Shown one piece after another: positions 8,283 through 54,118 of a stretch of DNA of 64,000 nucleotides. Made by a program: the position numbers and the translations under genes. The notes below the pieces were generated by a model. The model made no database searches. It saw only the letters and a list, made by a program, of their open reading frames with translations, and was not told where the DNA came from. The stretch covers positions 139,872,001 through 139,936,000 of the forward strand of contig NC_042999.1 in NCBI RefSeq assembly GCF_006345805.1, written 5' to 3'. The DNA comes from Octopus sinensis (taxonomy: Eukaryota). Every line of letters begins with the position of its first letter. The first letter of the stretch is position 1.

Positions 8283-8444
8283 TTTCGGCAGTTTCTCGAG
8301 CTTATCTTTCTGCTTTCGCCATTCTCTGACCGATTTCTCATCGACAGTGAATTGTCGACCAGCAGCTCGGTTCCCATGTATTTCGGCATAAGCTATCACT
8401 TTTAACTTCTGTTTAGCAGAGAACGATTTTCGCGCACGACCCAT
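8283..8444 (-). CDS. Exon encoding a Brinker-type (pogo/POGK-like) HTH DNA-binding domain
   Basis: MGRARKSFSAKQKLKVIAYAEIHGNRAAGRQFTVDEKSVREWRKQKDKLEKLPK, 54 codons, then phase-0 donor AAA|GTAAAT. Confidence 0.68.
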
Positions 8445-9039
8445 GATAAACACTAAAGTCTGCCTTTGTTGCTTACACAGTTATCCAAACAGTTTGCAGC
8501 GCCACCTTATGATGCTAAATGAATTAACGATAACTCTCGACTTCAGTTCACTTTTCCCCCCTAATGTAGCTGAACTTGCAATTATAACTTGATACATTTT
8601 TTTTTACGAACTCGAATGATATAAAATGTTCCTTTACATGGAAAGTACTTTCGAGGCCAATACTTAAATTTTGCCTTAAGTAGGTAAATTTTTTTGCACA
8701 CAATCATGAAAACGAAAATTATTTCAACCAAATGTAAAATTCGTAAGGAAGTTGATTTACCGAAAATGTAAGAATTGTTCGTGCAACAGCGTGATGTTTT
8801 GGAAGGCAATTCAGTGAGAAAATAATAAGAGTTAGTTTCTCAATAAAATATAAAACATGAGAATTTCTTGAATATGTATGAGAAGTTGGGAATAATTGTC
8901 TCTATTCAACATTGTGTTCATTTCAAATGAGGCGTAAAACTCAGCTGAGAAAAGTTCTAAGGTTAAACCGAACAGAATAAACTTTTAAATATCTCATGTT
9001 ATCCTCGTTATTACAAGCCTTTAATTCTTAATTTGGGGA

Positions 9040-9610
9040 CATCTTGTGATTTATTTTCTAATGATGTAAGAGGAAATAATATCTATTTGGGACATGTTTA
9101 TCAAGAAGCGATCAATAAGATAAGCCTTTAATTTAGAGACAGAAATACATATACAAACATTAAGAGTCCGGGATAAGAACAAGAAATGACAGGAGGAAAA
9201 AAATATCCGTGATGCAAAAAGCATCAGAAAATTTTTGCCAATGTATCAACTACGTGTTTAGGATGGGATCCCTTCAAAAGAGTGACATAACATGTTTTTA
9301 AGTTAATATTACATCCCGCAATTTCTTTTTGCTTTTATGTTTGTGTCAATCTTTACTTTTCAGTTCAAGAGCTTGTATTACTTTCTCCCTGCAAGCGGTG
9401 CATGATTATGTGCTTTTTTCTCTCGGATATCCAACCACCAAGTGCGTTAAAAAGTGGAACTCCACGAAGAGTTACAGAACCATTACAGCTTTTGTACTCG
9501 CACCTGAAGTAATGATTCTGGTCCCGAGATCGTTGGTGTCGGTAGGTGTGTTCCCTAAAGGATAGTTTGCCCTTACCTTTCTAGGATTTGACAAATTTGT
9601 ATTCATCCAT
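9040..9610 (-). pseudogene. Degenerate FLYWCH-MULE transposase relic
   Basis: MDEYKFVKS*KGKGKLSFREHTYRHQRSRDQNHYFRCEYKSCNGSVTL..(frameshift)HNH. Downstream GKNFLMLFAS and TCPK fragments resemble the MULE core. Confidence 0.68.
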
Positions 9611-10559
9611 TATAGGCAAGACGATAATAAAAAACAAAACTTCGCTATTAACAAAAAAAAATAAACGGCCAAATCCTCCAGAGTCAACTAAAAACACTCT
9701 AACCCTTTATTTTAACGGTTACAGTTAAGTCAATAATTGTCAGCCGAATATCATTACAGGATTATGAAGTCAATTACCAATGAAAAAGTTCCAAGTTTGA
9801 ACCCTTTCCGAACAGTTTTGTCACTTTTTCAATCCCTAAACTATTTCCTTCTGAACATCATGTATGATGAAAAGTACTGGTGCATCAAATTCTATCGCAC
9901 ATATTAGAGGTTTAAATTAAACATAATAGTTAACATATCTAAATTCGAAGCTGAGCTATGAATAAGATTATAGTTTTTCGGACTATTATCCTCATCTTAA
10001 GAAATTAAATATTTTAAAAATCTTAATGCAGGAGAGTTATTATATTTAAAATTCTCTGACAGAAAGGGGTGTATAGATGCTTAAAAGACAAAACGAGGGG
10101 AAATATCTGAGGTATGCATCAGTTTACTCTTTATCTCTATAAGACCGATATGAAAGGTAAACAATAAATTAGTTGACAGTCTCTCGGCGGTAAAGCCTCC
10201 AGCATGACATCGGTGTTATAGAGTTAAACTATAAACTAACCGAAACGTTCCATTGATCAATTACATTGCTATCATTAGAACACAACACATCTCTCGTTGA
10301 AATCAGTGTTGTTATTTGGGAACAATTACCTTCAACATCAACTCATACCGATAAATATGTATGTACTGAGTGCTTTCTCAATGTTTTAAACTCATAACGC
10401 ATACATATATATGTGTGTGAATGTGCATTATAGTATGAGGTTAATCGCTGTTTACTGATGTTAGCTTATTAATATTTTATATTTGTAAACAAATGAAAGC
10501 GATCATACACAGTATAACTCTCATTTATTTCCACCACGTTTGAAATATAAACACTCTCT

Positions 10560-10640
10560 CCCCCACTCAAACTCGTGTGACGTCACGATAACTTAGCTTC
10601 ATCGACCAATGAAATTGAGGTAGAAATTTCAGGACGCCGA
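10560..10640. promoter_or_regulatory. CRE/ATF palindrome plus CCAAT box in a CpG-retaining patch
   Basis: GTGACGTCAC at 10577-10586 and CCAAT at 10606-10610. Confidence 0.45.
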
Positions 10641-10805
10641 CGACATATACACAACATTCGTTTTTGTATGTGTGTTAAGCTACTTAGTCGTTTTCATTAT
10701 CACAAAATAGATAGAGGAAAAGAGAAGAGAAACGAGAGGGGTAAAGAGTGAAAATTATATTAAAAAGAGGAAAAAAAACCAAGTTTTAATAGATAGTTTC
10801 TTTAC

Positions 10806-11046
10806 CCAAATAAAACGTCGGTAGATCATAAGGACTTTCCTTGCGGTTGTTCCAAAAGTGCCTGCTGCATACTCGATGGTCACGACTAATGTGCTTCACT
10901 TCATCGTAATTATTCGGATCATAACCAGCGCGTCGTATCCACTCATTTCTTAAACGGACATTTTTCCATGGTAGTCGGTAGAAGCTAATCGGCCCGCCTT
11001 TCTTCTGAATGGAGCGACAGCCTTTCACTATACAGTTAGCCGGCAT
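10806..11046 (-). CDS. First coding exon encoding a THAP zinc finger (THAP-A)
   Basis: MPANCIVKGC..FYRLP..W..RVCSRHF..LPTF has the C2CH THAP signature. 80 codons + 1 nt, then phase-1 donor TTG G|GTAAAG; read-through stops 5 codons later. Confidence 0.8.
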
Positions 11047-11059
11047 TGTGGCGAACAAT

Positions 11060-11240
11060 AAAGAAAAGAACTAGCGAGCCTCAGAATTGAAAATGAAGGC
11101 CAATTTGGCGATCTAGCACGGATTATTGTCACGTATCAGACGCTATCAAATACTAGCAAAAAACATATAATAAAGACACAATCTCATGTAGACCACCGCC
11201 TTCTACCGTCTACCCGCTTCTCATTGGTCTGTTGATAAAA
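11060..11240 (-). promoter_or_regulatory. Putative promoter and 5'UTR of the THAP-A exon
   Basis: CCAAT box on the minus strand at 11227-11223, GC/CpG-containing sequence, and no strong acceptor directly before the ATG. Confidence 0.45.
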
Positions 11241-11772
11241 GCTATTTGAATGGTTTAAAAACTCGATAACTCTCGTACTTTCACATTGATGTTTTGCTGT
11301 CACGTTGTTTTATTCTAAAATTACTATTTGGAATAATTAATCCTAATCCAACTAATAGTTGGTATTACCAAAATGTTTTAGTACAATAAACGTCTGCATA
11401 AATTTTAACTGTTCAATCTAATGGACGGCACTTTTGTCTGAACACAATCTTAAAGGGAGTGGAATAAAATAAGAAACATTAAGCTTTATTTTTTTTTTAC
11501 TGTTTTATTTGGATGCCCTTCCTATTGCCAATCTCTCAACAGTGAATAAGAAAGGAACAATAATAGTAAAATTTAAATAATTTCGTCAAAACTTGTGTTA
11601 GGTTATAAATTTGGATTTCTTATAAAAAGGAATGGCATAGTATGTGCAGTCTTAAAAATATATTTGTCTATTTCATATATTTATATTACTTTTGTTTTTC
11701 TTTTTTATATCTGCTTACTATGAAACAGAGATGTTGTAAGAGAATGAGAGCCTGCCCCCTCTTCCTGGATGC

Positions 11773-11871
11773 AAAATTTCCTCTGGCCTATCATACTTGT
11801 TAATTAAAAATTCCTCTGGTCTACCATACTTGTAAATTAAAAAATTTTCTGGCCTATCATACTTGTTAATT
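11773..11871. repeat. Three copies of a ~33-bp tandem unit
   Basis: AAAATTTCCTCTGGCCTATCATACTTGTTAATT repeated three times with few substitutions. Confidence 0.85.
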
Positions 11872-12951
11872 CAAGTGCTCTCCTGAACACTGAAAACCCT
11901 TGCTAAGCTACTACTATGAAAGCATTGAAGGGTTTTGCCTGAAATGTGAGACTTCTTCCTCAGAGCATAAAATTATTTCATTGTTTGACTTATTGATTTA
12001 TAATTAGATATACCATTTAAATGATTTATTCTGGTGAGATCTAATCATATCAGGAGTTAAAACTTCTAATTTATCAGGGTTGATATGTATCCAATATATA
12101 ACAATGATGATGCAATCAACTAATCAGCAAAAAATCAACATACACTATCATATATTACTGCAGCTAAAGATCTCATTTGAAGTGAATATGCTGACATAAA
12201 ACAATTAGTCTTAGCTGACTCAGTCTGCCTCCACAATAATAACTACAACCATCACTACTGTCACTGTTAAATACAAACAGTTGTCTAACTCATTTACACA
12301 CACACAAAGGACTGGATTTAAACCATGGGAGGCCTGAAGCACTGCATGTTTGGTGGCCCCTTATACACAAGAATTAAAATCTTAGGAAATTACCAAATTT
12401 AAATCTTAAAATCCATCTATTTCAAATAATTGAATTTGATGAATTAGCAGAGAGTTTAAACAAATGACTGAAAATGTCACTTTATATATACACTTTTTCA
12501 AATTTCATTTTTCACACATCCATTTGCAGTGTTTCACTTTTCTTTCATTATGAATGACAGAAAATTACGAAAAAGAAACAAATAATTATTGTGGTTGTTG
12601 CTGTTCTAACGACATAATGAGTGTGTGAAAGAGAAAGAGTGGGGAAATACCAACATTTAAAAGACATGGATTTTAAAATTTCTTTTTTTAAATGGCTTCC
12701 CTTCATTCTTTTGCTATGCATGAAAAAAACAGGGGTCACCCCAACAAAGATGGAAAAATTCAAACAGCTATTCCCAAATACCTGCTTTTCCAGTAACATT
12801 TACTGCATTTTTGACTTTCAAGAAAATATATTTTTAACAAATGTTCACTAATGTGTCAAAATTATATCAGCGAAGTAAAGACCTTCTCTAAACTCAGTAA
12901 AACTTATATTCAGAACACTATTTCAGAAAATGATCACTGTTCTCTTTGAGC

Positions 12952-14655
12952 ATCATCATCATTTAATGCCTGTTTTCCATACTGGCATGGGTTGGATGGT
13001 TTGACTAGGCATTGGCAAGCCAGGAGGCTGCACCAGACTCCAGTCTGATCTGGCAATGTTTCTACAGCTGGATATCCTTCCTAACGCCAACCACTCTGAA
13101 AGTGTAGTGGGTGCTGTTTACAGGCCACCAGCTATGTTTGGATGGTGTTTTATACGTACTACTGGCACAGGAGCCAGTCCAGGTGGGGGGAGGGGTTGAC
13201 ATCGACCACATTTGGATGGTGCTTTTCATGTGCCATTGGCACAGGGAGCCAGTTGGGCGGCACTGACAATGACCCCGTATGAATGGTGCTTATTGCATGC
13301 CACCAGTATGGGAGCCAGTCAGGCGGCATGAGCATGGGCTAGAACTACAATTACCATTTTTGATATCGATTTGATTGAGATTCTGATAGTAATTTTACTT
13401 GACTCAATAGGTCTCCTCAAGCATGGCATGTCACCCAACAATTCAAAGGTACTTTTTAAATGGGCTGGTTATGCGACACTGGAAATAGGCTATGGCTGTG
13501 ATCTCACTTTACTTGCCGGGTCTTCTCAATCACAGCATACCTCCAGAGGTCTCAGGCTCTTGTTGTTGCCTCTGTGAGGCCCAATGTTCGAAAGCCGTGC
13601 TTCACCACCTCATCCCATGTCTTCCTGGGTCTCCCTCTTCCACTGTTAAGGAGTGACACTTCTTCACACAGCTTTCCTCGTCCATACACAGCACAGCTGT
13701 CTCTCTTGCACACATCTGAGGCTTCTTATGTCCAACATTTCTCTCAGGGTGCTTACATTCTGTTGTGTGCACACACTGACATTACACATCCAGTGGATCA
13801 TACTAGCTTTCTGCCGTGTAGTATGGGAATATACACACATGCATCATACAGTTTACCTTTTACTTTGAGTGAGAGGCCCTTTGTCACCAGTAGAGGTAGG
13901 AGCCTTCTGAACTTTGTCCAGGCTATTCTTATTCTAATGGCAACACTCTCTGAGCATCCCCCACCTTCCGCACAACAGACTAGGTCACCTAGGTAGCGGA
14001 AGCTATCAACTACTTCTAGTTTCTCCCCCTGGCATGTGATGGAATTTGTTTTCTTTGCATCTTCTGTGATTATTGCCCCTGTGCATCTGCTGCACACAAA
14101 AAGCTATCATCCCGGTTAACCTTCCTTTGATGTCGCTGCATCTCTTATGCATCCATAGCTTACACTGGGTACATCTTATGGGGTTTCTACCTACACTTTT
14201 TCTACAGTTCAAGCAGGGCCATCTACCTAAAGGGGTTTGTGATTTGTTTGCCTTCCTACTTACTAGGACCTTGGTTTTTGCAACATTGATTCTAAGGCCC
14301 CCACTCTTCCTGGCCTGTTTCTTTACTCTAATGGCCTTGTCAACTGTATTATTTCAGTACCACATTACTCTAAGTCTGGAAGGGACTTTGCACCAGCCAT
14401 AGATTTGGTCTGTGGTGCTCAGTAAGCTGTCCCATAGGAATTTCCAGTTACCCTCTATATTCCAAGTCTCTAGCTCCTCCTCCCTCTTGTCAAATTTCTC
14501 AATGAGGATGTCCCTAAGTCTCTGACCATGCAAAAGGTTCTTTAGCTTCCAAATTCTTCTTTTCTGGATTGGTCTGCTTCTTTGTATCCGTCTGGCCTCG
14601 AGTGTAACGTCATTAATGACTAATCTATGCTGGGGGGGGGGTACATTCTTCATGA
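12952..14655 (-). mobile_element. Older RTE LINE copy of the same family with an internal deletion of the RT core
   Basis: (CAT)n tail at 12952. Fragments read GQRLRDILIE..GWCKVPSR, CRKSVGRNPIRCTQCKLWMHKRC and LEVVDSFRYLG. The RAIRE region joins directly to GLRINVAKTKV near 14310. Confidence 0.88.
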
Positions 14656-15759: not shown

Positions 15760-16960
15760 AAATATCTACATCAGCAACATCAAAAAGAAATGTCACCTAA
15801 CATAGTATATTTAACTGCAGCAGGTCGTTAAACTGAGCTTGCATATCATTATGCAAGTTATTCAAATGTTATCATCATGCAAATTACTGTTACTTGATTC
15901 CAAACTAGGAAATTGTAATAATACACAACATACAAAATTTATTTTCTAGAGCTATACTTTCCTTAAAAATGCAGTAATAGCTCCTTTGGAGGATAGATAG
16001 CTTCTCCTTGAAGCTGTTTATTAATCAAATTAATTTTATCAAATATATCTGATAAATAAAATATATCACACTTAGCTGCAACCATTCGTTGGCTGAGATT
16101 GATGTTAGCCAGAAATGAGACAATAGTGTACCAAGGTGCAAAAAAAAAAAAATGACACAAACAATTACCTTTTGATAACCATTTCATTTCTGTGTGAATT
16201 CCAAAGCGGCAATGTGCACTTAATTGTTTTGCAAGTAAGTATTGCTGGTGTTATCACACGGTGTATACAAAATACAGAATTTATTAAATAAGCAATAAAA
16301 CCTCTGTATCTGCCTATCATGGATGCACAGTCATTAGCACAAGCTATTATATTTCTGAGGGAATATTATGTTCCTTGAAATAAGTTATGGTTTTGAAAAC
16401 TGCTTTGCCTTTAGTGTGTGTTATAAAATGTCTGAAAATAGCTTTACTATCTCTCAGGGTAGATTCATCAGGTTGAAAAGGAAATTTCTGTACTTGTAAT
16501 TCGGCTACTAGCTGCTTTTCTACATCTTAACCATTTCATCAATGGCACCGTGACACTGATGAGTTACTTAAAGGAATCTTACAAGTAATTTCATTCACCT
16601 TGTTTCATAAGTGATGAAACTATGACAGATGCCACAGGCAAAATTAGTTTCATCGATATTATGGGGTTTCCCAACCTCTGCTATAATTTTAGAAATTTCA
16701 TAAGACACCAGTCAACCATTATTATTTTTTCATAATTCATTACTAAATATCTGATTCACCATTTTCCTTGCTTGAAATTCATTGCGCAGCTTTTTAAAAT
16801 ATTTTACTAGATTGTTTTACTTGTCTTTGAACTTGGTCTCTAAATAGATTTTTAGCTTAGCTGGCTTCATACTATCATTTGACAGCATATCCATACATAT
16901 GAGAGACATTAGTTTCACTTCATTCTGTGGCAAGAGAATACAGCCATAAGACAGATATTT
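15760..16960 (-). pseudogene. hAT (Charlie/Buster-like) transposase relic
   Basis: Fragments FQPDESTLRDSKAI, CANDCASMIGRYRG, KWLSKGNCL and YLSDIFDKINLINKQLQG. Confidence 0.8.
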
Positions 16961-21862: not shown

Positions 21863-21902
21863 CAACATCATATTCTTCATTTATCTGATTTTGAGATTTC
21901 AA
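21863..21902 (-). CDS. Candidate 40-nt coding exon (LKSQNQINEEYDV + 1 nt), phase 0 in and phase 1 out
   Basis: Acceptor TTTATTTTTTTCTCCAG| and donor TTG|GTAAGT; the phase-0 frame is open. Confidence 0.55.
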
Positions 21903-22875: not shown

Positions 22876-24388
22876 GTATCTCACAAAAATATGTACACCC
22901 CTAAACAAATTTCAGTAAAATTGCCATTACTCTGATAATATCGAAGGAAATCAAACGAAATTTATACAGAATAAAGTATATTATACATGCAAATATACAA
23001 ATTTGGAATACAAAACAATAAGCATTTTCAAACGATACAAAAATATGTACACCCCAAAGAATTATTTGCCATATTCAATATTTGGTGTGACCGTCCTTGC
23101 TTTCAATGACAGTTTTCTGGGCATAGAGTCAACTAAATTTCAGCAGTTAACCGATTAAATCAACCTCCATTCATCCTGAATGATGGCTTTCAACTGTGTT
23201 ACACTGCGGGGCTTTTTTCTCCTCAACCTTACTTTTCAAAACACCCCACAGATGTTCTATTGGGTTGAAATCAGGGGACATGGTAGGTCAAGGCAATGCC
23301 TTTTCCTTTTTATATGTTAAAAACTAAGTCGTCATCTTCCTAGTTCTTTGAGGCTTTTCAACATTGCTTTCTGCAATAAGTCACAATAAAGCCTCGAACC
23401 CATTGTTCTCTCAATAAATGTGAGTCCTCCCACACCAGCCGCACGCATGCATCCCCAAAGCCTAACACTTCCACCGCCATGTTTCAGGGCAGGCACGGTG
23501 CATTTGTCACTATCTTCACCTGGTGGTCGCAATACTCATTTAATACCATCTGACACAAACAGGTTGATTTTAGGCTCGTCAGAAAAAAAAAAAACCATTC
23601 AAAAACTCCTTCCCCTTACTTACGTAGGCTTCGGCAAAAGAAAGACGACTTGATTTATGCCTGGTAGTGAGGAGAGGCTTCCTACGAGGAATACGTCCAT
23701 GAAGACCACACTGGTTCAAACTTCGGCGAACTGTTTGAGCGGATACACTCTTTTCACTTACAGAAGACACTTCTTGGGCCAAAGATGAAGCGGTACGACG
23801 CCTGTCGTCCATCACGCAACGTTGGATGTGTCGAATATCACGCGCAGTTAAAATAGAAGGGCGACCTGGACGATGTTTATTGCTTAGCCGTCCAGTAGCT
23901 TTGTACTTCTGAATTACTTTGGCAATTGTGTTTACGCTAATATCTGTTCGTTCGCTAATTAACTTGTATCCTAAACCATTCTTGTGCAAATTAAAAATAA
24001 TTTTCTTCAAATCTTCAGACAATTCTTTTCCTTTTGGTGCCATTTTAATCACAATGAAGATTTTCACCACGGTACACAAATAAGAATTCCTGTAGATGCA
24101 ATAACAGTAACCGGTGCAAAAATGCCAGGAGAAATAATTTATTAGAATTGAAATTATCAGCAATATTTTGATTTAGTGAAAAAAGTGGATAAAATATTGA
24201 ATGTAGCAAATTTCCTCTATTGTGTACATATTTTTGTAACGTTTGAAAATTAATATTTCGTTCCTATCTTTGAAAATGTTTATTATTTCATTCAGTATAA
24301 ATTTCGTTTGATTTTCTTCGATATTATTAGTGTAATGGCAATTTTACTGAAATTTGTTTAGGGGTGTACATACTTCTGTGAGATGCCC
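22874..24388 (-). mobile_element. Near full-length Tc1 (DD34E) transposon
   Basis: TA-CAGTATCTCACAAAAATATGTACACCCC TIR of about 100 bp is mirrored at 24285-24388. Transposase motifs MAPKGKEL, GRPS, KHGGGSV..WGC and SPDFNPIEHLW are present. Confidence 0.93.
23070..24043 (-). pseudogene. Tc1 transposase: N-terminal HTH region intact, DDE region frameshifted and with stops
   Basis: Open from ATG 24043 to the poly-T slip near 23590; the catalytic half is disrupted. Confidence 0.85.
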
Positions 24389-30910: not shown

Positions 30911-31139
30911 TATATATAAAAGAAAGGTTGTGTGTCTGTCTACTCCGATTTAGATTCCTAACTACTCCCACATTTTGCGATGCAGTTTAACCAAAACCGG
31001 GTATCTTATAGTCGTGATTCATATCGAGCCCTTCTGGGTATTAGCGCGCGTCTACGATGAGACTATGATTTTACAAATAATTTACCATCATTTTTTTCCA
31101 TTTTAATGCATATTTTAAAAAATAAACGGAAGTAACTCT

Positions 31140-31677
31140 CAAACTTCACACCAATATGCGTGCTCATATGCGACGTAATATCACATCAGCAGCATTTCCT
31201 CACACCCTCCTTGCACTTGGCGAAGGCAAAATACCAGGGGATGAAAATGGTAATATTGCCATCGATTCCATTTGTACCATTGTTAAGACGCCTTCTGATC
31301 TCAGAGATGCAGTGTTCCCAGATCTACAAGCTAATTATCAGAATATGGATTGGATTGGCAAAAAGGCTATACTGGCCCCGAGGAATAAAACTGTTCACCA
31401 TATTAATGATGAAATGCTAAAACTCATTCCTGGGGAAGTCTATGTATATCAGTCTATCGATACAACTCCTGACCCAGAGGACGTCATCAACTATCCAATA
31501 GAGGTACTCAATTCCTTTGAGCACCCCGGACTACCACCACACTTTCTCAAACTTAAAGTTGGTGCCCCTATAATGCTCATCAGAAATTTGGTTCCCCCAA
31601 AACAATGCAATGGCACACGTTTGATCGTTAAGTCCTTATCTCCCACCGTAAGCTTATATCAATATTTGCCTGAATAA
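31140..31677 (+). pseudogene. Helitron RepHel Pif1 helicase fragment
   Basis: KLHTNMRAH, LLALGEG, AILAPRN, GLPPHFLKLKVGAPIMLIRNL and CNGTRL. Confidence 0.9.
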
Positions 31678-38799: not shown

Positions 38800-39327
38800 C
38801 AGAGAATTTCCTTCAGATAATTTTGGATCTGATGGATTTCTGCCGGACAGGACTATATTATCGTTTTTCGCTTTACGACTTACTAAATCCTGCCATTGCT
38901 CTGTAGGCTTTTCTGTGCTCAAAACAAATTGTGTGGTGGGTGAATTTTGAAAAGTTTGCAATGTCATTTTAGGGCACTGTATTGTGGGTATCGCTCCTGG
39001 CTTCAAGAACACGCGTGTGCGGCATCCGAATTTCTTCATTAAAACCCCTAGAGAATCATCGCTGGTGAAATGAAGAGAACATATGGCAGATGAAACACAT
39101 GGTGCCCAGTTTTTACGCCCAGTCTGAACGAAATTGATCCATTTGGACCTTAAAACGGGATCCTTCGGAAAGCGATGTAAACTGGTCCCGGATCCTGCAC
39201 TCGAAGACTGAATGGTATCACAAAATCTAACCACGCAATGTTGGGGCATTATTTCGATCGATCTGCTTATCTTCACGATAGATCCAAAACTATCTCTTTT
39301 CAAAAATATTTCAGTGAAAATTGCCAC
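38800..39327 (-). CDS. Phase 0-0 exon (528 nt) encoding a THAP zinc finger plus linker (THAP-B)
   Basis: Acceptor CTTCTTTTCTGTTTATGTAG|GTG. MPQHCVVRFC..LHRFPKD..W..ICSLHF..LKPGAIPTI. Donor CTG|GTAAGT. Confidence 0.85.
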
Positions 39328-39705: not shown

Positions 39706-40282
39706 GGAAAATACGAAGGAAGAGTATTTTGTGTATGTAGTCGGCTATCTGTTAGTGTGAAAGTAAATATAAGAAATAAAAAGGCGTTGTTAACCAATTC
39801 ATTTCGTTTCAAGTCAACCTACATTACGAGTAACGATGCATAACAGGTTACTCCTTCTCTATCCCCCTCATACTTTTTCTATCAAACACATGTCACTGAC
39901 AAATAGCAGTTTTTCATTGAATGAAAACTGATAGAAATGTGACAACAGCAGAAACTACTTTACTAATTTTCAATAGCTTTTAAGGATAAACTATGTCAAA
40001 AATAAATGATCTACCTTGTTTTTATTGAGTAACAAATCATCTTCATTTATTACATTTTTCATAATTTCATTCAGTTTAACGATAACATTTTGCAAATCGC
40101 CTGCCATTTTCTTCTTTTTGTTTTGGTAACACGTGCTGCCACCTGATGAGTGTTACCATGTGATAACAATCATTCCGTAGCAACAATACAGTTATCTCCC
40201 TTTATTTATGCTTCCGAGGCTTCGGAATTCCCGATGACCAATTTTCGATTGTCTAACTTATGATATCACTATGGTGAACTAC

Positions 40283-40640: not shown

Positions 40641-42391
40641 GGTTAATATAGGGCGTTACGATTATCAGAAAATCAAAAAAAAAATGTGTGTAATAGGTGT
40701 AAAACAACTTCCTATGAACGAATATGAAAAAAAAAATGCGCTCTCGCGAAAGAGGGGTGGGGGAGAGGCCTTTATATCGGGAATTTCCGAAAGCGTCTGA
40801 ACCGGGCACAAAAACAAAAACAAAAACAGCGTAATAGGTGTAAAACAACTTGCTCTAAACGACTATGATGAAAAAAATGCGCGCTCGCGAAAGGGGGGTG
40901 GGGGAGAGGCTTCGGAAATTTCACATCTTCAGTCCACGGCCTTTAAACTAAGAAAAAATAGTGTAATTGGTGTAAAACTACTTGTTCTAAACGAGTATCA
41001 AGAACACACACTCACACATGAATCATAAACTCCGTATTTTTGTACATATTTCGCAAAAAAAAAATAAAATAAAGAGAAGAAATTCTGGAAAAAGTGAAGA
41101 AATGTTGGATCTCATTCCTTAGTTAAAGCTATTTTAAACATTAAATTTATGCTTTTCTTTGAAATAGTTCAGATATATGCAATTCTTCTCACTTATTAAG
41201 ATGCATTTATCAGAAAAAATTATTATTTTGTGTCAATCCTTCCCTAATTATCCTTTATTAATTAGTTTTGGCGTGTATTTTTTTCCCAAATTTATTTTTT
41301 CACCTTTACAACACTGTTTAGTAAAGCAATTAATTATCTTTATAATTTGCATATTTGACTTATTAATCAAAATTCTCTCGATGTAATATATACTAAGTAA
41401 TGCATCCTTCATTTATGTGTTGCGTTCTGTATTATGCATGCGTGACTGTTTGTATGTAAGTGTGTTTAACTGTGCACATGAATGTGAATATTAAAGAACA
41501 TATTTATTTACTATGATTGTTATTTTCAGAACATATTTATTTACTATGATTGTTATTTTCAGAACAAATAAGTCTTTTGGCTGTTATGTTATTGATGTTA
41601 TTATTATTGCTAGTTAAAGGGTGGTGACTTGGCTGAATATTTTGAGTCTTGTAGTATGTAGTTGTGTTAGTCAATATTCTGAGTTCAAATCCAACTCATT
41701 TCTTTATCATCATTATCGATGGACCACTCAAAGAGGTATGTATACATTATCATTTTCGTAACATAATTTCTGTAGTATTTCAAGATGTTTCTGACACGTA
41801 TTTTGATTCACATGGCGGAGATCCAACATTTCTTCACTTTTTCCAGAATTTCTTCTCTTTATTTATTTTTTTTGCGAAATATGATTTTATGATTCATGTG
41901 TGAGTGTGTGTTCTTGATACTCGTTGAGAACAAGTAGTTTTACACCAATTACACTATTTTTTCTTAGTTTAAAGGCCGTGGACTGAAGATGTGAAATTTC
42001 CGAAGCCTCTCCCCCACCCCCCTTTCGCGAGCGCGCATTTTTTTCATCATAGTCGTTTAGAGCAAGTTGTTTTACACCTATTACGCTGTTTTTGTTTTTG
42101 TTTTTGTGCCCGGTTCAGACGCTTTCGGAAATTCCCGATATAAATTTTCCGAGGCCTCTCCCCCACCCCTCTTTCGCGAGAGCGCATTTTTTTTTTCATA
42201 TTCGTTTAGAGCAAGTTGTTTTACACATATTACACTTTTTTTTTTTTGTTTTGGTGCCCGAGGCCTCTCCCCCACCCCCCTTTCGCGTGCGCGAATTTTT
42301 TTTTTCATATTCGTTCATAGGAAGTTGTTTTACACCTATTACACACATTTTTTTTTTGATTTTCTGATAATCGTAACGCCCTATATTAACC
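40641..42391. mobile_element. Foldback (MULE-like) element with ~470-570-bp modular TIRs and an 8-bp TSD
   Basis: Termini GGTTAATATAGGGCGTTACG and CGTAACGCCCTATATTAACC. TSD AATAATAC at 40633-40640 and 42392-42399. Arms span 40641-41113 and 41819-42391. Confidence 0.9.
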
Positions 42392-45800: not shown

Positions 45801-46370
45801 CAGCATGACACTGTATGTGACAATATTATTTCTATATTCTGAATTGATCCACTCAATGGGTTCTATATAATTTTTGTCTACCCAATTTTATTCACAAAGT
45901 GTGGGTCAACATATGTCTCAGATTCCATGCAATGGGATTGAACTAAGGATCTTATGACTGAGAAACAAACTTCTTAACCAATTAGACATCTCTCTCTCTC
46001 TTATATATATATTCAAATAAGTAAAACACAATATCATGAATAGCGATAGCGAAACCAGTCGATATATTAAAATTATATTAAAACTATGTAAGTGTGCGTA
46101 TTTTCCTTTTTTAATTTCTTATATATATATAGGAAAATTTTATTAGAAATATCCATTTTTCAGGAATTTATGAGGAAACAAAGTGGGTGGGGGCTACACT
46201 TCTGTAGATATGTCGGAAAAGCCCCTCCCCTTTTTTAAAGCATATTGAAGAAGCAGAGATCAAGTTTTAAAAATTCACGCTTAATCAAACAAACAAATGC
46301 CAAGAAATCTGAGACTATTCTATGGAATTTGTCCAAATTCTATAACAAAAGTAAAGACAACAGTATAGAC

Positions 46371-46589
46371 CAGGGCTCCCAAACTACGGTCCACGGGGTC
46401 AGTTCATCCATGCTTGGAACATCTTATATCTGTGAGCAAACATTTTCAAAAATGAAGTATGTGAAGTCAGCACATGGAACGAGGTTGACTGATGAAAATT
46501 TGAAAGCAATTCTCTTGGTTGGATGCAGCAATTCCAAAGCAAATATTGATATCTTAAAAGCTAAATACCATTTTCACAAATCTTATTAA
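46371..46589 (+). mobile_element. Non-autonomous hAT fragment: TIR fused to the dimerisation-domain coding end
   Basis: CAGGGCTCCCAAACTACGGTCCACGGG terminus followed by SMLGTSYICEQTFSKMKYVKSAHGTRLTDENL. Confidence 0.8.
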
Positions 46590-48468
46590 CGTTTTTTGCT
46601 GCTTAGTTTGTGAGATTCGGATATGTGCGCACTGGGTGTGATAAACTATCTCATTGCTAACGCCACCTTCTTTGATAACTTTTTGGTAAATATGTTGGTT
46701 GTCTTTATTTGTTGGGTATTCAATGTATTGTATTAAACAAAACGGTTGTTCGGCTCGCTCTCATCATTCTCTTAGTTATCTGGCCAGCTTTGAAAGAACT
46801 TTCATGACCCCTTCCTGGTATAGACGAATGGGGAAGGCGCAAGAAATGAAGAGAACCAAATACACGGTGAAGGACTGCAGCAATATTGGGGTGTTTGCCA
46901 GTGGTGGTTGGCAGTCAAGGATACCTATGGAATTCTGTGCATTTAATAATTACAGGAGTGAACAGAAGAGCTATCAAGAACAACTGGTCCACTGATCGGT
47001 GGGGTTTGTAGGAGGTCGCTTGGATACTGGGCTGGGCTTGATCAACCTCGATAGGGTTGCCTGGATGAGGATGTATGCTGTATGAAACCCAAAACACCCA
47101 ATGACTCCAGCAAACAACACTGACGATGTGTCCATGCATTGCATCTATAAATGTATGTTGAACAGAATTTGTCAAAATATAACTTAGGTTTCGGCCAGTT
47201 TAGGCTCAGGCTATGTCTAACTTAAAAGCACCGCCAATAGAAGACAACACATGTAGAATTTATTTGTGTGTGTGTATGAAAGAGAGAGGGAAAGATTAAA
47301 TACATTTTTTTAATTATTTATATTCTTACACACATGGATAAATTATCAATGCAGCGAATCTTTGAAAAGTAAAACTGTCTAAACTTTTTCCACGTCTTTG
47401 TTGTTATTCGAAGAGACCTATGATCAAAAACGTTCCAGCTACGACCATCCCGTATTTTATTCAGATTTAATGTATCTAGAACCATGTTATCTGTCCTTCT
47501 TTTAGGACAGTAGAATTGGGGTTTAATGAGGGAGATGTGGTTGCGCCTTCTAGCTAGTCTAGTAAACAAAAAACTTTCTCGTTGGATCTTTGTTTACTAT
47601 CATACCAAACTTGAGGAGCTCTTGATTTAATCCTGTACTCGTTTGATTGTTCTGGGTTTTGTTAGCGCGAGGGGCTCTCTGCAGTTGCTCGAACTGCTAT
47701 GAATAACAGCCAAATCTCTCTTAAATCATCCTACAGTCTTAACAAAGGAAAGGTATTAGATTGCATAGCTTAGCTTACGTACTCATAAAAAGATACGGTG
47801 GTGGCGAGTAGAAAAATATTAGTTACAGACCTATTCAATCAAAGACGATTTGGGGCTGAACAACTACTTTCGGTTACTTTTTTCACGGCCCTTAAGTTGT
47901 TAATATCGAAATAAGCGCAGTTTTCATAACATTTCGCTTTTTTCCCCAGTGACTAGTAGCATGTTATCAGTTTCTTTTTATTTTTCATTTTCACATCTTT
48001 CCTCTTATCAAGGTACATGTATTGCACAATTAATGCAATAAAATAATGAATGTCGATTGCGCAGTGTTCTAGGTAAAATGCATGAAAAAAAACTATTCAC
48101 TGCTTATTGTCAACTACTAATTAGAATTTTTGAAAGCAACTTCCGTATCCTACACCGTCCCGGTTATTAGCAGACAGTCAGCAGTAAGATCGTTTTTACG
48201 TGTACTTTTAATCGAGAGCAGTCTATCAATACTTGACAAAAATAACTGTCACTAGTTACAATGCGGAGATGCGCGAACAAAAATTTCTTCATAATATTTA
48301 AAAAAAATCTTTTGAAACAGAATTTATGTCCGCGAAATCGGTGTCGAGAAAAAGAGTAATTGATGAATTATGGGCCGCCAGATTTAAATCGAGTTATTCA
48401 GTTGACGAGATTCATTCACTAAACACATGTAAACAAACGCTTTCACATACACACGTGAATATACTTAC

Positions 48469-48873
48469 TTTGTTCGTGTTTCTTTGTCTTATACATCCAG
48501 GAGTATTTGTGATAGCCAGTATTTCTGGAACAGATATTGTTGAAATGGGACTGTTTATTGCGACAGATAATCTTGTTGCATGTGATTCCATCGCTCGTAT
48601 CATCTCTCCTTCCGCTCTAAACTTATTACTTTTCTCAATGTTCGTCGAATCTTCAGTGTGGTTGTGAGTCTTGTGCAATTTTGTTATTGTGTTGTTACAG
48701 ATGTGCAACCTTGCTTTGCAACGCAACGATTTTTTTCTGTAACATGAGTAAAAGCGTGTGTCTTCATCTGTTTTACTCATTTTTTCATAATTGAAAATAT
48801 ATCCTTCGTACATCACTTTGTCGTGACCGTCTGTTACAGGAATCCATATACCGTTATATGGGTTTTGCTCCAT
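48469..48873 (-). CDS. Exon encoding a FLYWCH/WRKY-GCM1-type zinc finger of MULE origin
   Basis: YEGYIFNY..FYSC..C KARLHI..HNH, 135 uninterrupted codons, then phase-0 donor AAA|GTAAGT. Confidence 0.82.
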
Positions 48874-49099
48874 TCTGGAAGCCCTGTTTATTTCCTAGGC
48901 CGCTTGTAACCAAACGAAGTAACCGAATCTTTAAAATGACAGCTTGAAATTAAGAGTAAATTTTAAAGTTCTAAAAAAATTAAATACATTATTCTGATGA
49001 AATGGATAAAATTGATACTGAAATCAATCGTATCCTGTTTGAAAAAAATTCCGTTCTTTCTGTGCAAGTCGTGAATACAGTTACAGAGTGTAAAATTAT

Positions 49100-49160
49100 G
49101 ATGACTTAATCCAAAAAATGGCGCCGGAAATTTATTTCATCGACTGAAATATGGCGACAG
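49100..49160. promoter_or_regulatory. YY1/ETS-like promoter motifs upstream of the FLYWCH exon
   Basis: AAAATGGCG (49115-49123) abuts CCGGAA (49124-49129); a second AATATGGCG lies at 49148-49156. Confidence 0.45.
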
Positions 49161-49451
49161 AGAAATAGCATCAAATTCGTGTACGTGTATGTATTAACAT
49201 ATATTTTGACATTCCAAACTGATGATTCACTCTAAGACTACTCCGAGTTTCCGCGTGCATGCGTTCATTCAGTCTTAACAACATACCCCTTTAAGAAACG
49301 AACACTGATACTTCTAAATCTAACCCTAAATGTCTCATCTGAACGAACGCATACAAATGAGAAATGCTGAGTAGCAACTAAATGAATAAACAGCTTTGAA
49401 TGAATGAAAAAAATAAACATATATTAAAAGTTGAAGGGTGTCTTGTATATA

Positions 49452-50326
49452 CAGTGCCTCCTCATTGAAGCAAACTAAGGTGGGGGGAGGATGTCCGTTT
49501 TAGTCAACTGTCCGAATTAACCGATGGTAGAATTTAATATTGTATACGTACATGATATTGGAAGTATATGCAACATTTGAGTACATACTGTAAAAATATA
49601 TAACTATGCAAGTATAAATTCTGTTTTTAAAATTATTTAACATTAATACATAAAATTAAAAAAAAAGTTCATACCGTAAGTTCCCCGGTTGATGGGCTAC
49701 CTGCTTCTCCAGTGGTAATTTTATTACACATTCCATGGCGATTTCTAAATCGCCATAACCACCCATCACTAGCTACAAAATTGTCGATGCCCATGTCCCT
49801 AGCTAACTTGACAGCAGCACTTTGAATTTCCACACCACGGATGTTATTACCACAAGATCGTTGATGGATAAACCACTTCGTTACAGCTTCCTCAAGATTT
49901 GTATCTTTTGCAACTCTCATACGCTTCCTTGCACCAACAGATAGTTTAGAATTTGCAGCAACATTATATTTCAAAGAAAATGTAGTAAGTTTGTCCTTAG
50001 CTTTGCGTATACCTGAAACTGTCTGTTTTTTAATACCATATTGAGCACAAATACTCGTCACCGAAGCACCAGCCTCTAACTTCTTTATAAGTTCCAGTTT
50101 CTGGATCACAGATAGAGTAACATGCTTTTTCTTTGGCTTCTTACTTTCTCTTGTAGCCATCGTGTATATTACGAGTCTGAAAGTTATCTAATTCCAGAAA
50201 TGCGAAAGGAAATTGCAAAGAGAAACATTACCAGTGAAATGGCAGTGAAAATCAACATTGTCAGTCTCTCGCTTAAATCAGATTTCGACCGGTTTATCCG
50301 ATATCTGATTTTAACGAATGCATGTA
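49452..50326 (-). mobile_element. Eroded Tigger/pogo deletion derivative that hosts the HTH exon
   Basis: TA-CAGTG.. left terminus with Tigger-like subterminal GTCCGAATTAACCGA. The right terminus is degenerate. No DDE coding sequence. Confidence 0.55.
49675..50160 (-). CDS. Exon encoding CENP-B N-terminal HTH plus Tc5-type HTH (Tigger/Jerky-like DNA-binding region)
   Basis: LSVIQKLELI..YGIKKQTVSGI..LEEAVTKWF..FVASDGWLWRFRNRH, 162 codons. Donor ACG|GTATGA is phase 0. Acceptor ..ACTTTCAG| at 50177/50176. Confidence 0.82.
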
Positions 50327-50396
50327 TATACGTGTGTGTGTGTGTGTGTCTCTAAATATGCATCTTTAAGATTTACGTTAATATATATAAATATAT

Positions 50397-50900
50397 ATCA
50401 TCACCTTCATTTAACGTCCGTTTTCCATGCTGGCATGGGTTGAATGGTTTGACTGGTAAGCTGGGGAGCTGCACCAGGTTCCAGTCTGATTTGGCACGGT
50501 TTCTGTGGCTGGATGCCCTTCCTAACGCCAACCACTCCAAGAGTGTAGTCGGTACTTGTTATGCGACACTGGCATTGGCCACACTTATGATTTCACTTGG
50601 CTTGATGGTCTCCTCATATCGCCAAAGGTCTTGGTCACTTGTCATTGCCTCTGTGAGGCCCAATGTTTGATGGTCATGCTTCACCACCTTGTCCCATGTC
50701 TTCCTGGGTCTATCTCCTCCACACATTCCCTCCACTGTTAGAGTTTGGTACATTTTCACACAGCTGGCCTCATCCGTGCACGTCACATGACCATACCAAT
50801 GCAGTCGTCTCTCTTGCACACCACATCTGATGCATCTTATGCCCAACTTTTCTCTCAAGACACTGTTGTGCATTCACACTGACATTACACATCCAGCTTC
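50397..50900 (-). mobile_element. RTE 3' end fragment
   Basis: LREKLGIRCIRCGVQERRLHWYGHV..GDRPRKTWDKVV, a truncated 3'UTR and a tail near 50400. Confidence 0.88.
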
Positions 50901-50994
50901 ATTTCTTTCAAATCTGCAATCAATTTTACATCTGACACGTGACACACTGTACACCAGTACAGGTAAATACTCTTTTGAAAGAGAGAGTGTGCAT

Positions 50995-52143
50995 TGTGCA
51001 TCGTCCAGGAATGATGGCATATCAGCTGAGGTATATGAATATGGTAGCAGTCACCTGCAGAACAAGTTACGTGAACTCTTAATCTGGGAATTAAGATCAG
51101 TCCCACAGGAGTTTAAAGATACCTTTATTGTCCATCTTTATACGCATAAAGGCAACAAATGTGAAAGTGACAACCATAGAGGTATCTCCCTTTTGTGTGT
51201 TGCTGGGAAGATCCTTAGAAAGTTTATCTTAAACAGACTAAATGATGCCCTTGCCAGCTTAGTGTTGCCTGAATCTCAGCATAGATTTTGGGCTGGTAGA
51301 GGCACAGTAGATATGATTTTTAGCCTAAGGCAGCTGCAGGAAAAGGTTTGTGAGCAGAACCAAGAACATTTTGTTACTTTTGTAGATCTAACTGAAGCTT
51401 TTGACACTATATCTAGGGATGTTCTTTTGGTTGTCCTTAGAAAGCTAGGTGTTCCCAAAAAGATGCCCAATGTCATCATTTCTTTCCATCAAGGGATGAT
51501 GGCTTCTGTCAGATCTAGCGGGTAAGTGTCCGATTCATTCACAGTTTCAAATGAGATGAAACAAGGCTGTGTTCTTGCACTGCTCTTATTTGCTTTGTAT
51601 TTCTCCATCATGTTGGAAACAATGTTTGTGGGTGTTAAAAAAGGAGAAAAGTTTGAGTACAGAACTGGTGGTGGCTTGTTCAACCAACTGCACTTCAAAG
51701 CAAAAACTAAGATTTTGGTACAAGCAGTTCAAGATTTGCTCTTTGCAGATGATTGTGCACTTGTAGCATACACTCTTGAGGACATACAATGGATTCTAAA
51801 CAACTTTTCATGTGCATTGAAGGCTTTTGATCTGACCATCAGCATCAAAAGAACTAATCTTGTCCATCTGCTCATTCTTGACCATCTTCCCACTGTTGCC
51901 CCTATTGTATATGTTGATGGGAAAGCATTAAAAACTGTTCTTGGTTCCATTGTGTCCAATGATGCTAAGATGGATAAAGTAATTGTGTCCAGAATCAGGA
52001 AGGCTAATTCCACTTTTGGTAAGCTTTATCATAGGCTTTGGAACAGCCACAACGTATTGTTGAAGGTGAAAGTCAATGTAAAGAAGTCAGAGGTCTTGAC
52101 AACATTGCTTTATGGTGCTGAATCTTATGAACTTTTCAGCTGA
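50995..52143 (+). pseudogene. Degenerate RTE/BovB-type reverse transcriptase
   Basis: NHRGISLL, FVDLTEAFDTISR, KQGCVLA and DLLFADDCAL, with a stop at 51523-51525. Confidence 0.88.
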
Positions 52144-52224
52144 TCCTCACATATATATATACATAGGTTTGGTGATGATAAGTGTTAATGCACAAAACTC
52201 TTGGCCTTTGAATTAACAACCTCA

Positions 52225-52562
52225 GAATGCTGAACCATTCAGACGAGATGACAAAAGACTGAGATACCTAGCACTTTGCTATACTGAAGAAGACTTGTAC
52301 TCTACAGCAGAAGTATTAAGGCTGCATCTCTTGGTGAAGAGGCCCAGCTTGTAAGAGTCCTGTGCTGGTTCTATGTAAAAAGCACTTGTGCCAGTGCCAT
52401 GTAAAAGCACTCAGCACACACTGTAAAGTGGTTGGCATTAGGAAGGGTATTCAACCATAGAAACCAAACTAAATCAGACTGGAACCTGGTGCAGCTCTCT
52501 GGTTAAATCATCCAACCCTTGCCAGCATGGAAAACAGTCATTAAAGGATGATGATGGTGATA
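52225..52562 (+). mobile_element. RTE 3'UTR fragment with (GAT)n tail
   Basis: GAGATGACAAAAGACTGAGA..GGTTGGCATTAGGAAGGG..CCAGCATGGAAAA..GATGATGATG. Confidence 0.7.
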
Positions 52563-53941
52563 ATGAAATATACACTCACACACACACTCGCATGCGCACA
52601 CACACACACTCGCATGCGCGCACACACACACACACGTCATCATCATCATTTAATGTCCATGTTCCATGCTGGCATAGGTCGAACAGTTTGACAGGATCTG
52701 ATGAGTCAAGGACTGCATCATGCTCCAGTGTCAGCTTTAGCATGGTCTCTACAGTTGCATCTTCATAAAACCAACCACTTCACTGTGTGTACTAGATGCT
52801 TCTTTTCAATGAGCACTAGTGAGGTTACCATGCAGCTTGCAAGGCTACATACCTTGAGTGAGAAGGAGGAACCTTATGTTAGGAGAATAAAGAATAGAGA
52901 GGAATAAAGTATGAGGGAAAAGGGCTGGAGCTGAACAGGTTTCTTGCTATATGATCACTCATGTTTTAGATGAGAGGTGGAAATTGGAGATAAAGTGTCA
53001 GAGTGGACCTTGATGGTACAAGGTGGGTAGGAATGAGTGAGACAGAGGTGCTAGGAGTGAATGAGAAGAGTAAGAGAACCAGCATGGCCACAGCTCTGAG
53101 CTGAAACTACAAAGAAAATATTTTATCAAACTCAGATGGATGGAAAACAAGTGCAACTTCAGCTGGATTTGGACTCAGGATGTACCTTAGCTCACTCCTT
53201 CCATCAAATCGACACTGCCTGAAGAGGTGAATGGTGTACCATATGTCAGGTGTTAAAGTGATCACAGAGCAATGCGAGATGAAGTGTTTTGCTCAAGAAC
53301 ACAACGCACCATTTGGTCTAGGTATTGAAACCATAATTTCGCAATTATGAATACAACACAATCATAAGGTCATGATTTAATAGTAATGATGATGATGATG
53401 ATAATAATAATAATAATAATAATAATGGTTTCTAATTTAAGCACAAGACGGGTGATTTTAAATGGAGAAGGGAGCTTAGCTCATACCCAGTCCAACTCAG
53501 CAGTTGACATATTTATTTTACCAATCTTGAAAGCATGAAAGGTAAAGTTGATCTTGCTGGGACTTGAATGCAACCCGAAGAAAGCTGGAATAAATACAGT
53601 TATAAATATTCTATTTGATGTTCCAGTGATTCTATCAGTCTATCACCTTCAATGACAATAATCCTTTGGGAGGGGGATAGGTCATTACATTGGCCCTAGT
53701 GCTCAACTGGTACTTATTTTATCAACTCTGAAAGGACAAAAGCAAAGTTCACTTTGGCAGCATTTGAAGTTAGAATGTAAAGTTGGAAGAAGTGCTTTAA
53801 ACATTTTGTTGCTAAGCATTTCTGATACCTGACTCAAATGTATCAACAGTATTTGACTTGTCAATAAAACAAAGCCACTTCTCAGTAGAAAACTGCATTT
53901 TTTCCATGTAATTGCTAAAATAAATAAACTTTAACACTTAC

Positions 53942-54118
53942 CATCATAAAGTTTTTATGTTTCTTTACATAACGGATTAATGTTGTTTTTGGAATGCTAA
54001 ATATTTTAGAAGCTTTCATGTAACCCAGCTCTCCTTTCAAGACAGCCATAATAGCTCCTTGAAGATTTTCTTTGTGCCATGAACCCTGTTGTGTTTTTCT
54101 GCAATAATTCCTCACCAT
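53942..54118 (-). CDS. Phase 0-0 exon (177 nt) encoding a pipsqueak-type HTH
   Basis: Acceptor TTATTATTTTCAG|ATG. MVRNYCRKT..WHKENLQGAIMAVLKGELGYMKASKIFSIPKTTLIRYVKK. Donor ATG|GTAAGT. Confidence 0.85.

Follow-up and report, generated by a model that had tools for sequence, protein, structure and literature searches.

How do six intact DNA-binding domains of transposase type come to stand in a row on one strand of an octopus chromosome, each running into a splice donor, and to what do they belong? The question is raised by 64,000 nt of the Octopus sinensis genome (contig NC_042999.1; C3:139,872,001-139,936,000), hereafter the window, for which an original prediction made from the sequence alone had proposed a menu of captured N-terminal exons spliced to one shared downstream body. 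Here, we report that the window is the 5' part of O. sinensis LOC115209932, which is transcribed from the minus strand and is the orthologue of O. bimaculoides LOC106877732. It is highly probable that the six window open reading frames (ORFs) are alternative N-terminal exons of this one very large gene, all with a common BTB/POZ body. This reading is supported by exon anatomy, reading-frame logic, single-copy status, purifying selection, interspecies conservation and annotated isoforms. The array extends across more than 185 kb and contains about 30 variable exons in four tiers, every one of them on the minus strand. The heads that they encode fall into at least eight unrelated classes (THAP, psq, CENP-B/Tc5, FLYWCH, Brinker, Tc1/mariner-type helix-turn-helix (HTH), Crypton-derived DUF3504 and small zinc fingers), and most of the variable exons are not paralogous to one another. 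Judged from its sequence, the locus may yield dozens of different putative transcription factors.

Results

Six window exons and their donors

A stop-to-stop scan returned six minus-strand ORFs where they had been predicted, and all of them pass the Pfam gathering thresholds for the domains assigned to them. Scores against thresholds (bits) were 39.1/20.4 for HTH_psq, 32.0/21.2 for CENP-B_N and 50.3/22.2 for HTH_Tnp_Tc5, 46.6/23.6 for FLYWCH, 63.3/23.9 and 43.3/23.9 for the two THAP domains (THAP_A and THAP_B, respectively) and 32.1/23.4 for BrkDBD. Each has a native Met start (ATG at 54118, 50160, 48873, 39249, 11046 and 8444) and, as had also been predicted, the ORF scan found no DDE-type ORF after any of the six exons on the minus strand of the window. 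The hexamer GTAAGT occurs only 15 times on the entire minus strand of the window, so its presence directly behind three of the six domains is improbable (at least three of six within 60 nt behind a domain, chance probability about 5e-5).

Five of the six proposed donors are exact annotated junctions, the coordinates listed (53942, 49675, 48469, 38800, 10806 and 8283) being the final exon base before the GT. The donor proposed for the Brinker exon at 8283 (AAA/GTAAAT; the slash marks the exon boundary) was rejected: it is phase 0 and hence out of frame with the shared exon L2, and the annotated junction lies 82 nt further on, at 8201. The original count of five phase-0 donors among six also had to be revised, as four are phase 0 and two (THAP_B and Brinker) phase 1, the latter because their acceptor is L2 and not the linker exon L1. 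The exons concerned are listed in Table 1.

Table 1. Variable exons, shared exons and one transposon relic at the locus. Negative coordinates are positions to the left of the window, that is, downstream on the minus strand.
Feature	Position	Strand	Properties
psq-HTH variable exon	53942..54118	-	59 codons MVRNY...KNFMM; phase-0 donor ATG/GTAAGT; Pfam HTH_psq 6e-10; strong acceptor caattgcttattattttcag/ directly before the ATG; exon internal in O. bimaculoides X4/X7 (P0059, P0060)
CENP-B_N + Tc5-HTH (pogo/Tigger-type) variable exon	49675..50160	-	162 codons; phase-0 donor ACG/GTATGA
FLYWCH zinc-finger variable exon	48469..48873	-	135 codons; phase-0 donor AAA/GTAAGT; Pfam 3.8e-12
Leader exon MKNVINEDDLLLNKNK	40015..40062	-	16 codons, without DNA-binding domain; phase-0 donor AAG/GTAGAT
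THAP_A variable exon	38800..39327	-	ATG 39249, 150 codons from ATG; phase-0 donor CTG/GTAAGT; Pfam 3.7e-17
Tc1-family relic, paired-type HTH ORF	23414..24139	-	sense orientation, in intron; ATG 24043; TAC/GTAAGT 23624, phase 0
L1 shared linker (LKSQNQINEEYDV + G)	21863..21902	-	inside window; 40 nt; acceptor phase 0 ttttttctccag/; donor phase 1 TTG/GTAAGT
THAP_B variable exon	10806..11046	-	80 codons + 1 nt; phase-1 donor TGG/GTAAAG, joins L2; Pfam 6.5e-11
Brinker-type HTH variable exon	8201..8444	-	81 codons + 1 nt; phase-1 donor ACG/GTACTG 8201, joins L2; Pfam BrkDBD 1.1e-7
L2 shared exon	-34887..-34936	-	-34887 corresponds to C3:139,837,113; acceptor phase 1, donor phase 0
L3 shared exon	-105221..-105316	-	acceptor phase 0, donor phase 0
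Exon 0	from -129270	-	acceptor phase 0 (TTTACAG/GCAGGA), donor phase 2 (CG/GTATGT)
Nearest BTB domain, split over two exons	-129.6 kb to -131.3 kb	-	after exon 0

The shared body and its tiered acceptors

The shared BTB/POZ body, which the original prediction had sought to the left of the window, was found within the 200-kb left flank, about 140 kb downstream of the six ORFs. Splicing of the phase-0 donors straight to the first BTB exon was rejected, as this acceptor is phase 2 and immediate stop codons follow; the failure of this direct joining led to exon 0 and the linker exons. Exon 0 is without a Met, is conserved in paralogous genes and restores the BTB frame by its phase-2 donor. Since it lacks a start codon and its acceptor is phase 0, there must be a further coding exon upstream whose donor is phase 0. 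The body consists, in order, of linker, exon 0, the BTB/POZ domain over two exons and a long Ser/Thr-rich tail, and BTB exon 2 ends at a conserved stop codon. The BTB domain (PF00651) occupies residues 160-263 of the body and scores 42.4 bits against a cut-off of 20.5. Its sequence matches in the PDB are IVNS1ABP, ZBTB17/18, SLX4 and BCL6, the best being of KLHL/ZBTB type, and the BTB chain of Drosophila CG6765 (8rc6), which we take to be a member of the TTK group, gave a weak match only (E = 4e-4).

The variable exons are sorted by the shared exon that lies next downstream. Tier 1, upstream of L1, holds the psq, CENP-B, FLYWCH, leader and THAP_A exons, whose phase-0 donors join L1, and tier 2, between L1 and L2, holds THAP_B, Brinker, a THAP duplicate and a two-exon THAP, with phase-1 donors that join L2. 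Variable exons of tier 3 join L3 and those of tier 4 join exon 0. Since the donor phase in every tier fits the shared acceptor, all isoforms converge on the same body. The predicted N-terminal exon menu on one body is thus what the gene models show, in a form more elaborate than had been foreseen: there are four nested acceptor tiers and about 30 exons, some of them internal. Nor is a single acceptor used by all six window donors, as psq, CENP-B, FLYWCH and THAP_A join L1 in the gene models and THAP_B and Brinker join L2.

Three THAP exons that join L3 are split (at -87.3, -88.8 and -91.1 kb); they encode the first two-thirds of the finger and end in ..CSK (..VCSK), and L3 supplies HF.. and a proline-rich end. 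The Pfam THAP match spans the junction between split exon and L3, so that the His of the C2CH finger is provided by L3. This suggests from sequence that the ancestral gene may have been a THAP-BTB gene whose first exon was duplicated and which foreign heads joined later. An unsplit relative at -125095..-124757, which reads ..CSLHFIGKNGPTPEHPDP within one ORF, points in the same direction.

Annotated isoforms

A query of 534 amino acids, rebuilt from exon 0 and the two BTB exons of the left flank, matched RefSeq proteins over its full length at 99-100% identity, namely those of LOC115209932 (O. sinensis, 100%) and LOC106877732 (O. bimaculoides, 99%). An orthologue in Argonauta hians is 82% identical over the body. 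LOC106877732 has at least 36 numbered isoforms that differ only at the N-terminus, and by tblastn these termini map one-to-one to ORFs of the window and its flank; 19 different variable exons were placed by means of the isoforms whose sequences were compared.

Each window exon has its O. bimaculoides isoform. The psq orthologue (X4/X7; 96.6% amino acid identity between the two species) joins L1 after ..KNLMM, and the CENP-B orthologue, the N-terminus of X5 (P0008; 94.4%), does so after ..STGELT. X6 (P0007) starts with MPQHC of THAP_A (97.3%) and has its junction at ..EGNSL/, X9 (P0006) starts with FLYWCH (junction ..RQRNTNK/), X19 (P0055) reads ..CCLYIPKYG/DTQNVQ across the Brinker junction, and the THAP_B exon of X20 (P0058), with junction ..TFYLG/, is 100% identical over the exon. 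L1 was recognised as the common acceptor of the variable exons upstream of it by tblastn of X4, X5, X6, X7, X9, X35 and X36. The leader exon joins either the THAP_A exon or L1 directly (tblastn of X35 (P0050) and of the older model P0068). The THAP_A acceptor, cttcttttctgtttatgtag/ at 39327, is entered from the leader in P0068 and in the 198-amino-acid P0069 (O. bimaculoides, UniProt-listed). Both psq and THAP_A carry acceptors and can be internal, and double heads of THAP and psq occur in O. bimaculoides.

All mapped isoforms continue into the common linker exons and the BTB body. Isoforms spliced in silico from the O. sinensis sequence have the lengths of the O. bimaculoides isoforms, and the FLYWCH isoform obtained in this way is identical over 731 amino acids to O. 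vulgaris CAI9720176.1. The same models are found, differently numbered as isoforms, under both an earlier (XP_0147...) and a later (XP_0528...) series of RefSeq accessions. By established practice, the NCBI pipeline adds further splice variants to a gene only if there are alignments in their support.

These isoforms also bear on the idea that each DNA-binding exon is a small domesticated gene of its own with private downstream exons. The 198-amino-acid model from O. bimaculoides, found in UniProt only (P0069, A0A0L8GD14), reads through the THAP_A donor into the intron, and short products of this kind may occur as minor forms. Against private genes stands the fact that L1, L2, L3, exon 0 and the BTB exons are common to the mapped isoforms as far as the tier allows, and the comparison of isoform N-termini with ORFs described below revealed no other conserved minus-strand coding exons between the variable exons. 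We therefore regard separate genes as very improbable.

Array beyond the window

The left flank holds further minus-strand ORFs for THAP (many copies), CENP-B/Tc5, psq, FLYWCH, Tc1- and mariner-type HTHs, small zinc fingers and three Crypton-derived DUF3504 domains of 350-400 amino acids. When isoform N-termini were compared with all ORFs of at least 30 amino acids in the 264 kb of window and left flank, all 36 matching ORFs were on the minus strand (p ~3e-11); counted here are the exons for DNA-binding domains, the leader exon, the linkers common to the isoforms, and exons that belong to the neighbouring paralogue. The same comparison revealed no further conserved minus-strand coding exons between the variable exons. 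Ordinary transposon fragments of the region lie on both strands.

Copy number, selection and turnover

Genome-wide searches covered the 2.72-Gb O. sinensis genome. With the concatenated exons as query, each of the six was single-copy at more than 90% identity, so the possibility left by the original prediction that they are young dispersed transposon copies is answered in the negative. The nearest genomic relatives are decayed Tigger-like copies of at most 56% identity and, at 50-57%, Brinker-like ORFs that form a dispersed family. The single exception is a THAP copy, 89% identical, on the same strand about 450 bp left of the window (-453..-693), which was the first sign that the array extends beyond it. 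THAP_B and this duplicate differ by 0.70 synonymous (dS) and 0.048 nonsynonymous (dN) substitutions per site (dN/dS 0.07), and their flanks are unalignable. Amino acid identity between O. sinensis and O. bimaculoides is 94-100% for the variable exons and 98.3% for the body.

It might be held instead that the ORFs are transposon relics that by chance share a strand, within an intron or within a uni-strand cluster of the kind that gives rise to PIWI-interacting RNAs (piRNAs), and that the RefSeq isoforms are artefacts of prediction. The domains are indeed N-termini of transposases, the region is full of transposon debris, and a neighbouring Tc1-type HTH ORF is truly a multi-copy relic with an inherited GTAAGT. 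Relics of this kind are hard to reconcile with exons that are single-copy but for one tandem duplicate, with a dN/dS of 0.07 at a dS of 0.70 in the duplicate pair, with conservation of 94-100% between species and with donor phases that fit the tiered acceptors. Moreover, the models recur under earlier and later RefSeq accessions, and the other transposon fragments are found on both strands. Fortuitous relics are accordingly quite unlikely.

The array has not remained the same in the two species. In O. bimaculoides X4/X7 the psq exon is preceded by a THAP first exon and a 25-amino-acid exon, neither of which has a counterpart at the O. sinensis locus. About 20 dispersed copies, 70-83% identical, make up the family to which this extra THAP exon belongs, which fits a capture still under way, with loss in O. 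sinensis as the alternative. One copy of the family is followed by a transposase-like ORF that by eye resembles Harbinger/PIF.

The BTB paralogue family

A whole-genome search with the BTB exon gave 37 candidates, all of which were scored. Twelve tandem BTB copies occupy C3:139,538,772-139,741,745 on the minus strand, all downstream of the array, with the array gene at the head of the cluster; four of the tandem BTB/POZ genes are within the 200-kb left flank and have the orientation of the array. A second cluster of five paralogues lies about 2 Mb away on the plus strand (C3:141,877,939-141,982,451), and the same search found no BTB gene between 139.742 and 141.878 Mb. Immediately upstream of the second cluster, and on its strand, are THAP-like ORFs (141,858,375-141,859,763).

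This layout decides on a further explanation, namely that the ORFs are alternative 3' (C-terminal) exons of an upstream BTB gene, as in lola or mod(mdg4), with donors that are incidental. Several of the ORFs begin at a polypyrimidine-AG and stop a few codons past the proposed donor, and BTB genes are present nearby on the same strand, all of which such an arrangement would lead one to expect. Yet every BTB paralogue of the contig belongs either to the cluster at 139.539-139.742 Mb, downstream of the window, or to the plus-strand cluster some 2 Mb distant, and the absence of a BTB gene upstream of the array excludes a 3' arrangement of the lola type. In addition, every gene model has the DNA-binding domain N-terminal to BTB, and a conserved stop codon ends BTB exon 2. 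The probability of C-terminal exons is in our estimate close to nil.

The same domain order was observed in paralogues and other relatives, the BTB domain being well inside the chain in 10 out of 10. In nine of these Pfam recognises an N-terminal DNA-binding module, always before BTB, and the heads include FLYWCH, FAR1/ZSWIM3_N, THAP, THAP with C2H2, Brinker with Tc5, and DUF3504. In the tenth, from the cuttlefish Acanthosepion, Pfam finds BTB alone and the N-terminus is Brinker/CENP-B-like by eye. For two relatives an uninterrupted coding sequence from DNA-binding domain to BTB is present on Logan contigs of 2.4-4.6 kb, in one case on 24 contigs; given such a gene structure, uninterrupted coding sequence on short contigs indicates messenger RNA of those relatives.

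At -190.6 kb there is a BTB paralogue whose first BTB exon shares its ORF with a basic repeat region (MPPKKRVRIGRR...AETAEQTQARRS). Upstream of several BTB paralogues there are also short basic ORFs (MGRPKKYATDEERRAA...) without Pfam match (-112869..-112531, -172185..-171799 and -177880..-177503). The short basic ORFs may represent a further type of N-terminal head, similar to AT-hooks or basic regions.

Points that weigh against a single gene

The reading of the six ORFs as alternative heads of one BTB gene has to be held against several observations. Support for splicing is indirect, as it consists of automated RefSeq/Gnomon models, mostly from O. bimaculoides, and of an O. vulgaris annotation; for the window exons it comes down to the O. 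bimaculoides models and a single O. vulgaris protein. Nine of the 10 predicted O. sinensis isoforms have no exact match in the public collection, where only the FLYWCH isoform is present, and the protein clusters that contain the CENP-B and THAP_A isoforms hold no O. sinensis member. The names of the O. vulgaris proteins cite RefSeq accessions of the other two species, and their annotation may thus have been transferred. A search of transcript-derived partial proteins found no partial Logan transcripts of the LOC115209932 gene. No upstream motif shared by the variable exons was found: when the 400 nt before each of 31 exons were compared, none of the k-mers stayed significant after correction for multiple testing. 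The whole-genome search detected no copy, at the O. sinensis locus, of the THAP exon found before psq in O. bimaculoides X4/X7. Finally, DNA binding by the heads and dimerisation by BTB are presumed from the domain families to which they belong.

Transposon remnants in the window

The Tc1-family HTH, which the original prediction did not list, is encoded in an ORF at 23579-24172 that is intact for 140 codons up to a GTAAGT whose frame fits L1. It was tried as a seventh variable exon and rejected: the ORF is multi-copy, its homology continues past the 'donor' to 23414, and no isoform uses the exon. A predicted isoform headed by it had no match in the public collection. The family comprises at least 140 dispersed copies of 65-86% amino acid identity; Y-V-S-K stands at the same position in other copies, so that the GTAAGT is coding sequence which the relic has inherited. 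The Tc1 HTH is a relic, and at most a candidate for future recruitment. Insertions of the Tc1 family are thus equipped from the outset with a start codon, a domain for DNA binding and a splice donor.

A large palindrome (40641-42391) precedes the leader exon by about 580 bp. Complementarity is 97% between its outer arms (40641-40771 and 42261-42391) and 99% between the inner ones, which measure 262 nt and are separated by 850 nt; an identical ORF of 75 amino acids is present in each arm. The reverse transcriptase region of a non-LTR (long terminal repeat) retrotransposon, nearly intact and intronic, is found at 4086-6321 on the plus strand, with ORFs of 492 and 272 amino acids and a local peak in the proportion of G and C of 0.46. 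Further reverse transcriptase fragments are at 13.8-14.7 kb (minus), 25.0-25.9 kb (minus) and 50.6-52.1 kb (both strands). Other intronic debris, recognised by eye at 31126-31677 (plus), 46239-46589 (plus) and 15963-16250 (minus), consists of one Pif1/Helitron-like helicase fragment and two fragments like the C-terminal dimerisation region of hAT elements.

Discussion

Proposed mode of expression

Each variable exon supplies an ATG, the DNA-binding head and a donor in phase with the next shared acceptor downstream (that of L1, L2, L3 or exon 0), and the annotated isoforms converge on the one BTB body. A transcript that begins with, or takes in, one of these exons would be spliced from its donor to that acceptor, with intervening variable exons skipped. 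The outcome would be a protein family in which a common module for oligomerisation bears any one of many DNA-binding heads. Most variable exons are probably first exons with promoters of their own. Acceptor-like sequence is not enriched overall upstream of the ATGs of the 31 variable exons (9.0 against 8.5 pyrimidines), which fits first exons, with psq and THAP_A still internal. The heads themselves were presumably captured from transposons that had inserted in the sense orientation. Going by their domains, the proteins would be transcription or chromatin factors with sequence specificity and would form dimers by way of BTB, and such pairing means that isoforms and paralogues could combine.

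One might speculate further, although we find it rather doubtful, that the locus, the 11 tandem BTB paralogues and the second cluster are an archive, at the level of protein, of past transposon invasions, with a role in surveillance like that of KRAB zinc-finger proteins or piRNA clusters. Sense insertions upstream of the BTB body would then have been recruited as heads that still recognise the ends of the cognate transposon, and the BTB module that they share would serve to bring in repressors or to make contacts in chromatin. Hints that recruitment continues are the extra THAP exon of O. bimaculoides, the Tc1 relic with its ATG, HTH and donor, and the uniform orientation of the heads.

Implications

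A single BTB body here carries about 30 unrelated heads from at least eight domain classes, in a tandem family that is conserved across octopods and seen also in a cuttlefish. Captures that differ in age are here assembled by nature at a single site, and this makes the capture of exons by host genes directly testable. It also points to a large unexplored regulatory diversity in cephalopods, beside the known expansions of C2H2 zinc fingers and protocadherins.

According to the survey by Mukherjee & Moroz 2023 (PMC10027918), most THAP and CENPB proteins of O. bimaculoides carry BTB/POZ; they are treated there as separate lineage-specific genes, and BTB is read as a 'transposon source'. The survey describes no single locus with alternative exons. 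The THAP and CENPB proteins that it covers may include products of the octopus locus, and the present findings suggest that some of the octopus THAP, CENPB and psq genes counted as separate could be isoforms of a few loci. Our literature search found no paper on LOC106877732, nor any on cephalopod genes with a choice of N-terminal exons for DNA binding. In automated annotation the locus figures as an 'uncharacterized protein' with numerous isoforms, and to judge from the searchable literature its nature has gone unrecognised.

Comparison with known systems

Transcription factors that arose by transposase capture are already known, as are BTB factors with alternative DNA-binding exons; the octopus locus combines the two, with reversed polarity. 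In Drosophila, lola, mod(mdg4), fruitless and the Broad-Complex are BTB transcription-factor loci with alternative DNA-binding exons, and FLYWCH and psq are among the modules that are paired with BTB in arthropods. The octopus locus resembles them in that one constant BTB part is spliced to one of many DNA-binding exons, in its dozens of isoforms and in the pairing that BTB allows. Unlike lola and mod(mdg4), it has its variable exons at the 5' end, encoding the N-terminus, and BTB in the 3' constant part. Whereas loci of the lola type employ one class of module per locus, the octopus modules come from at least eight unrelated classes, and since the variable exons are all on one strand, trans-splicing is not required. 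By sequence, the octopus BTB is nearest to BTBs of the IVNS1ABP, ZBTB and BCL6 type.

The arrangement of the exons recalls the clustered protocadherins and UGT1A, with a long tandem row of 5' variable exons, each with a donor to the first constant acceptor, and with the intervening exons skipped. In contrast to those loci, the octopus heads are mostly non-paralogous, the duplicates being the THAP_B pair and the split THAPs; there are four nested constant acceptors of differing phase, and psq and THAP_A can be internal. Also unlike in the protocadherins, no conserved promoter element was found upstream of the octopus variable exons.

A third parallel is the fusion of host genes with transposases, in which, as at the octopus locus, a transposase DNA-binding domain without catalytic domain is spliced to a regulatory or oligomerisation domain of the host. 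In transposase capture as treated by Cosby and colleagues in 2021, the host domain is said to be usually N-terminal of the transposase part. ZBTB11 has an N-terminal integrase-like domain followed by BTB (MBE 2025 F-box paper, PMC12062965). Unlike known host-transposase fusions, with one capture per gene, the octopus gene has about 30 alternative heads, all of them N-terminal.

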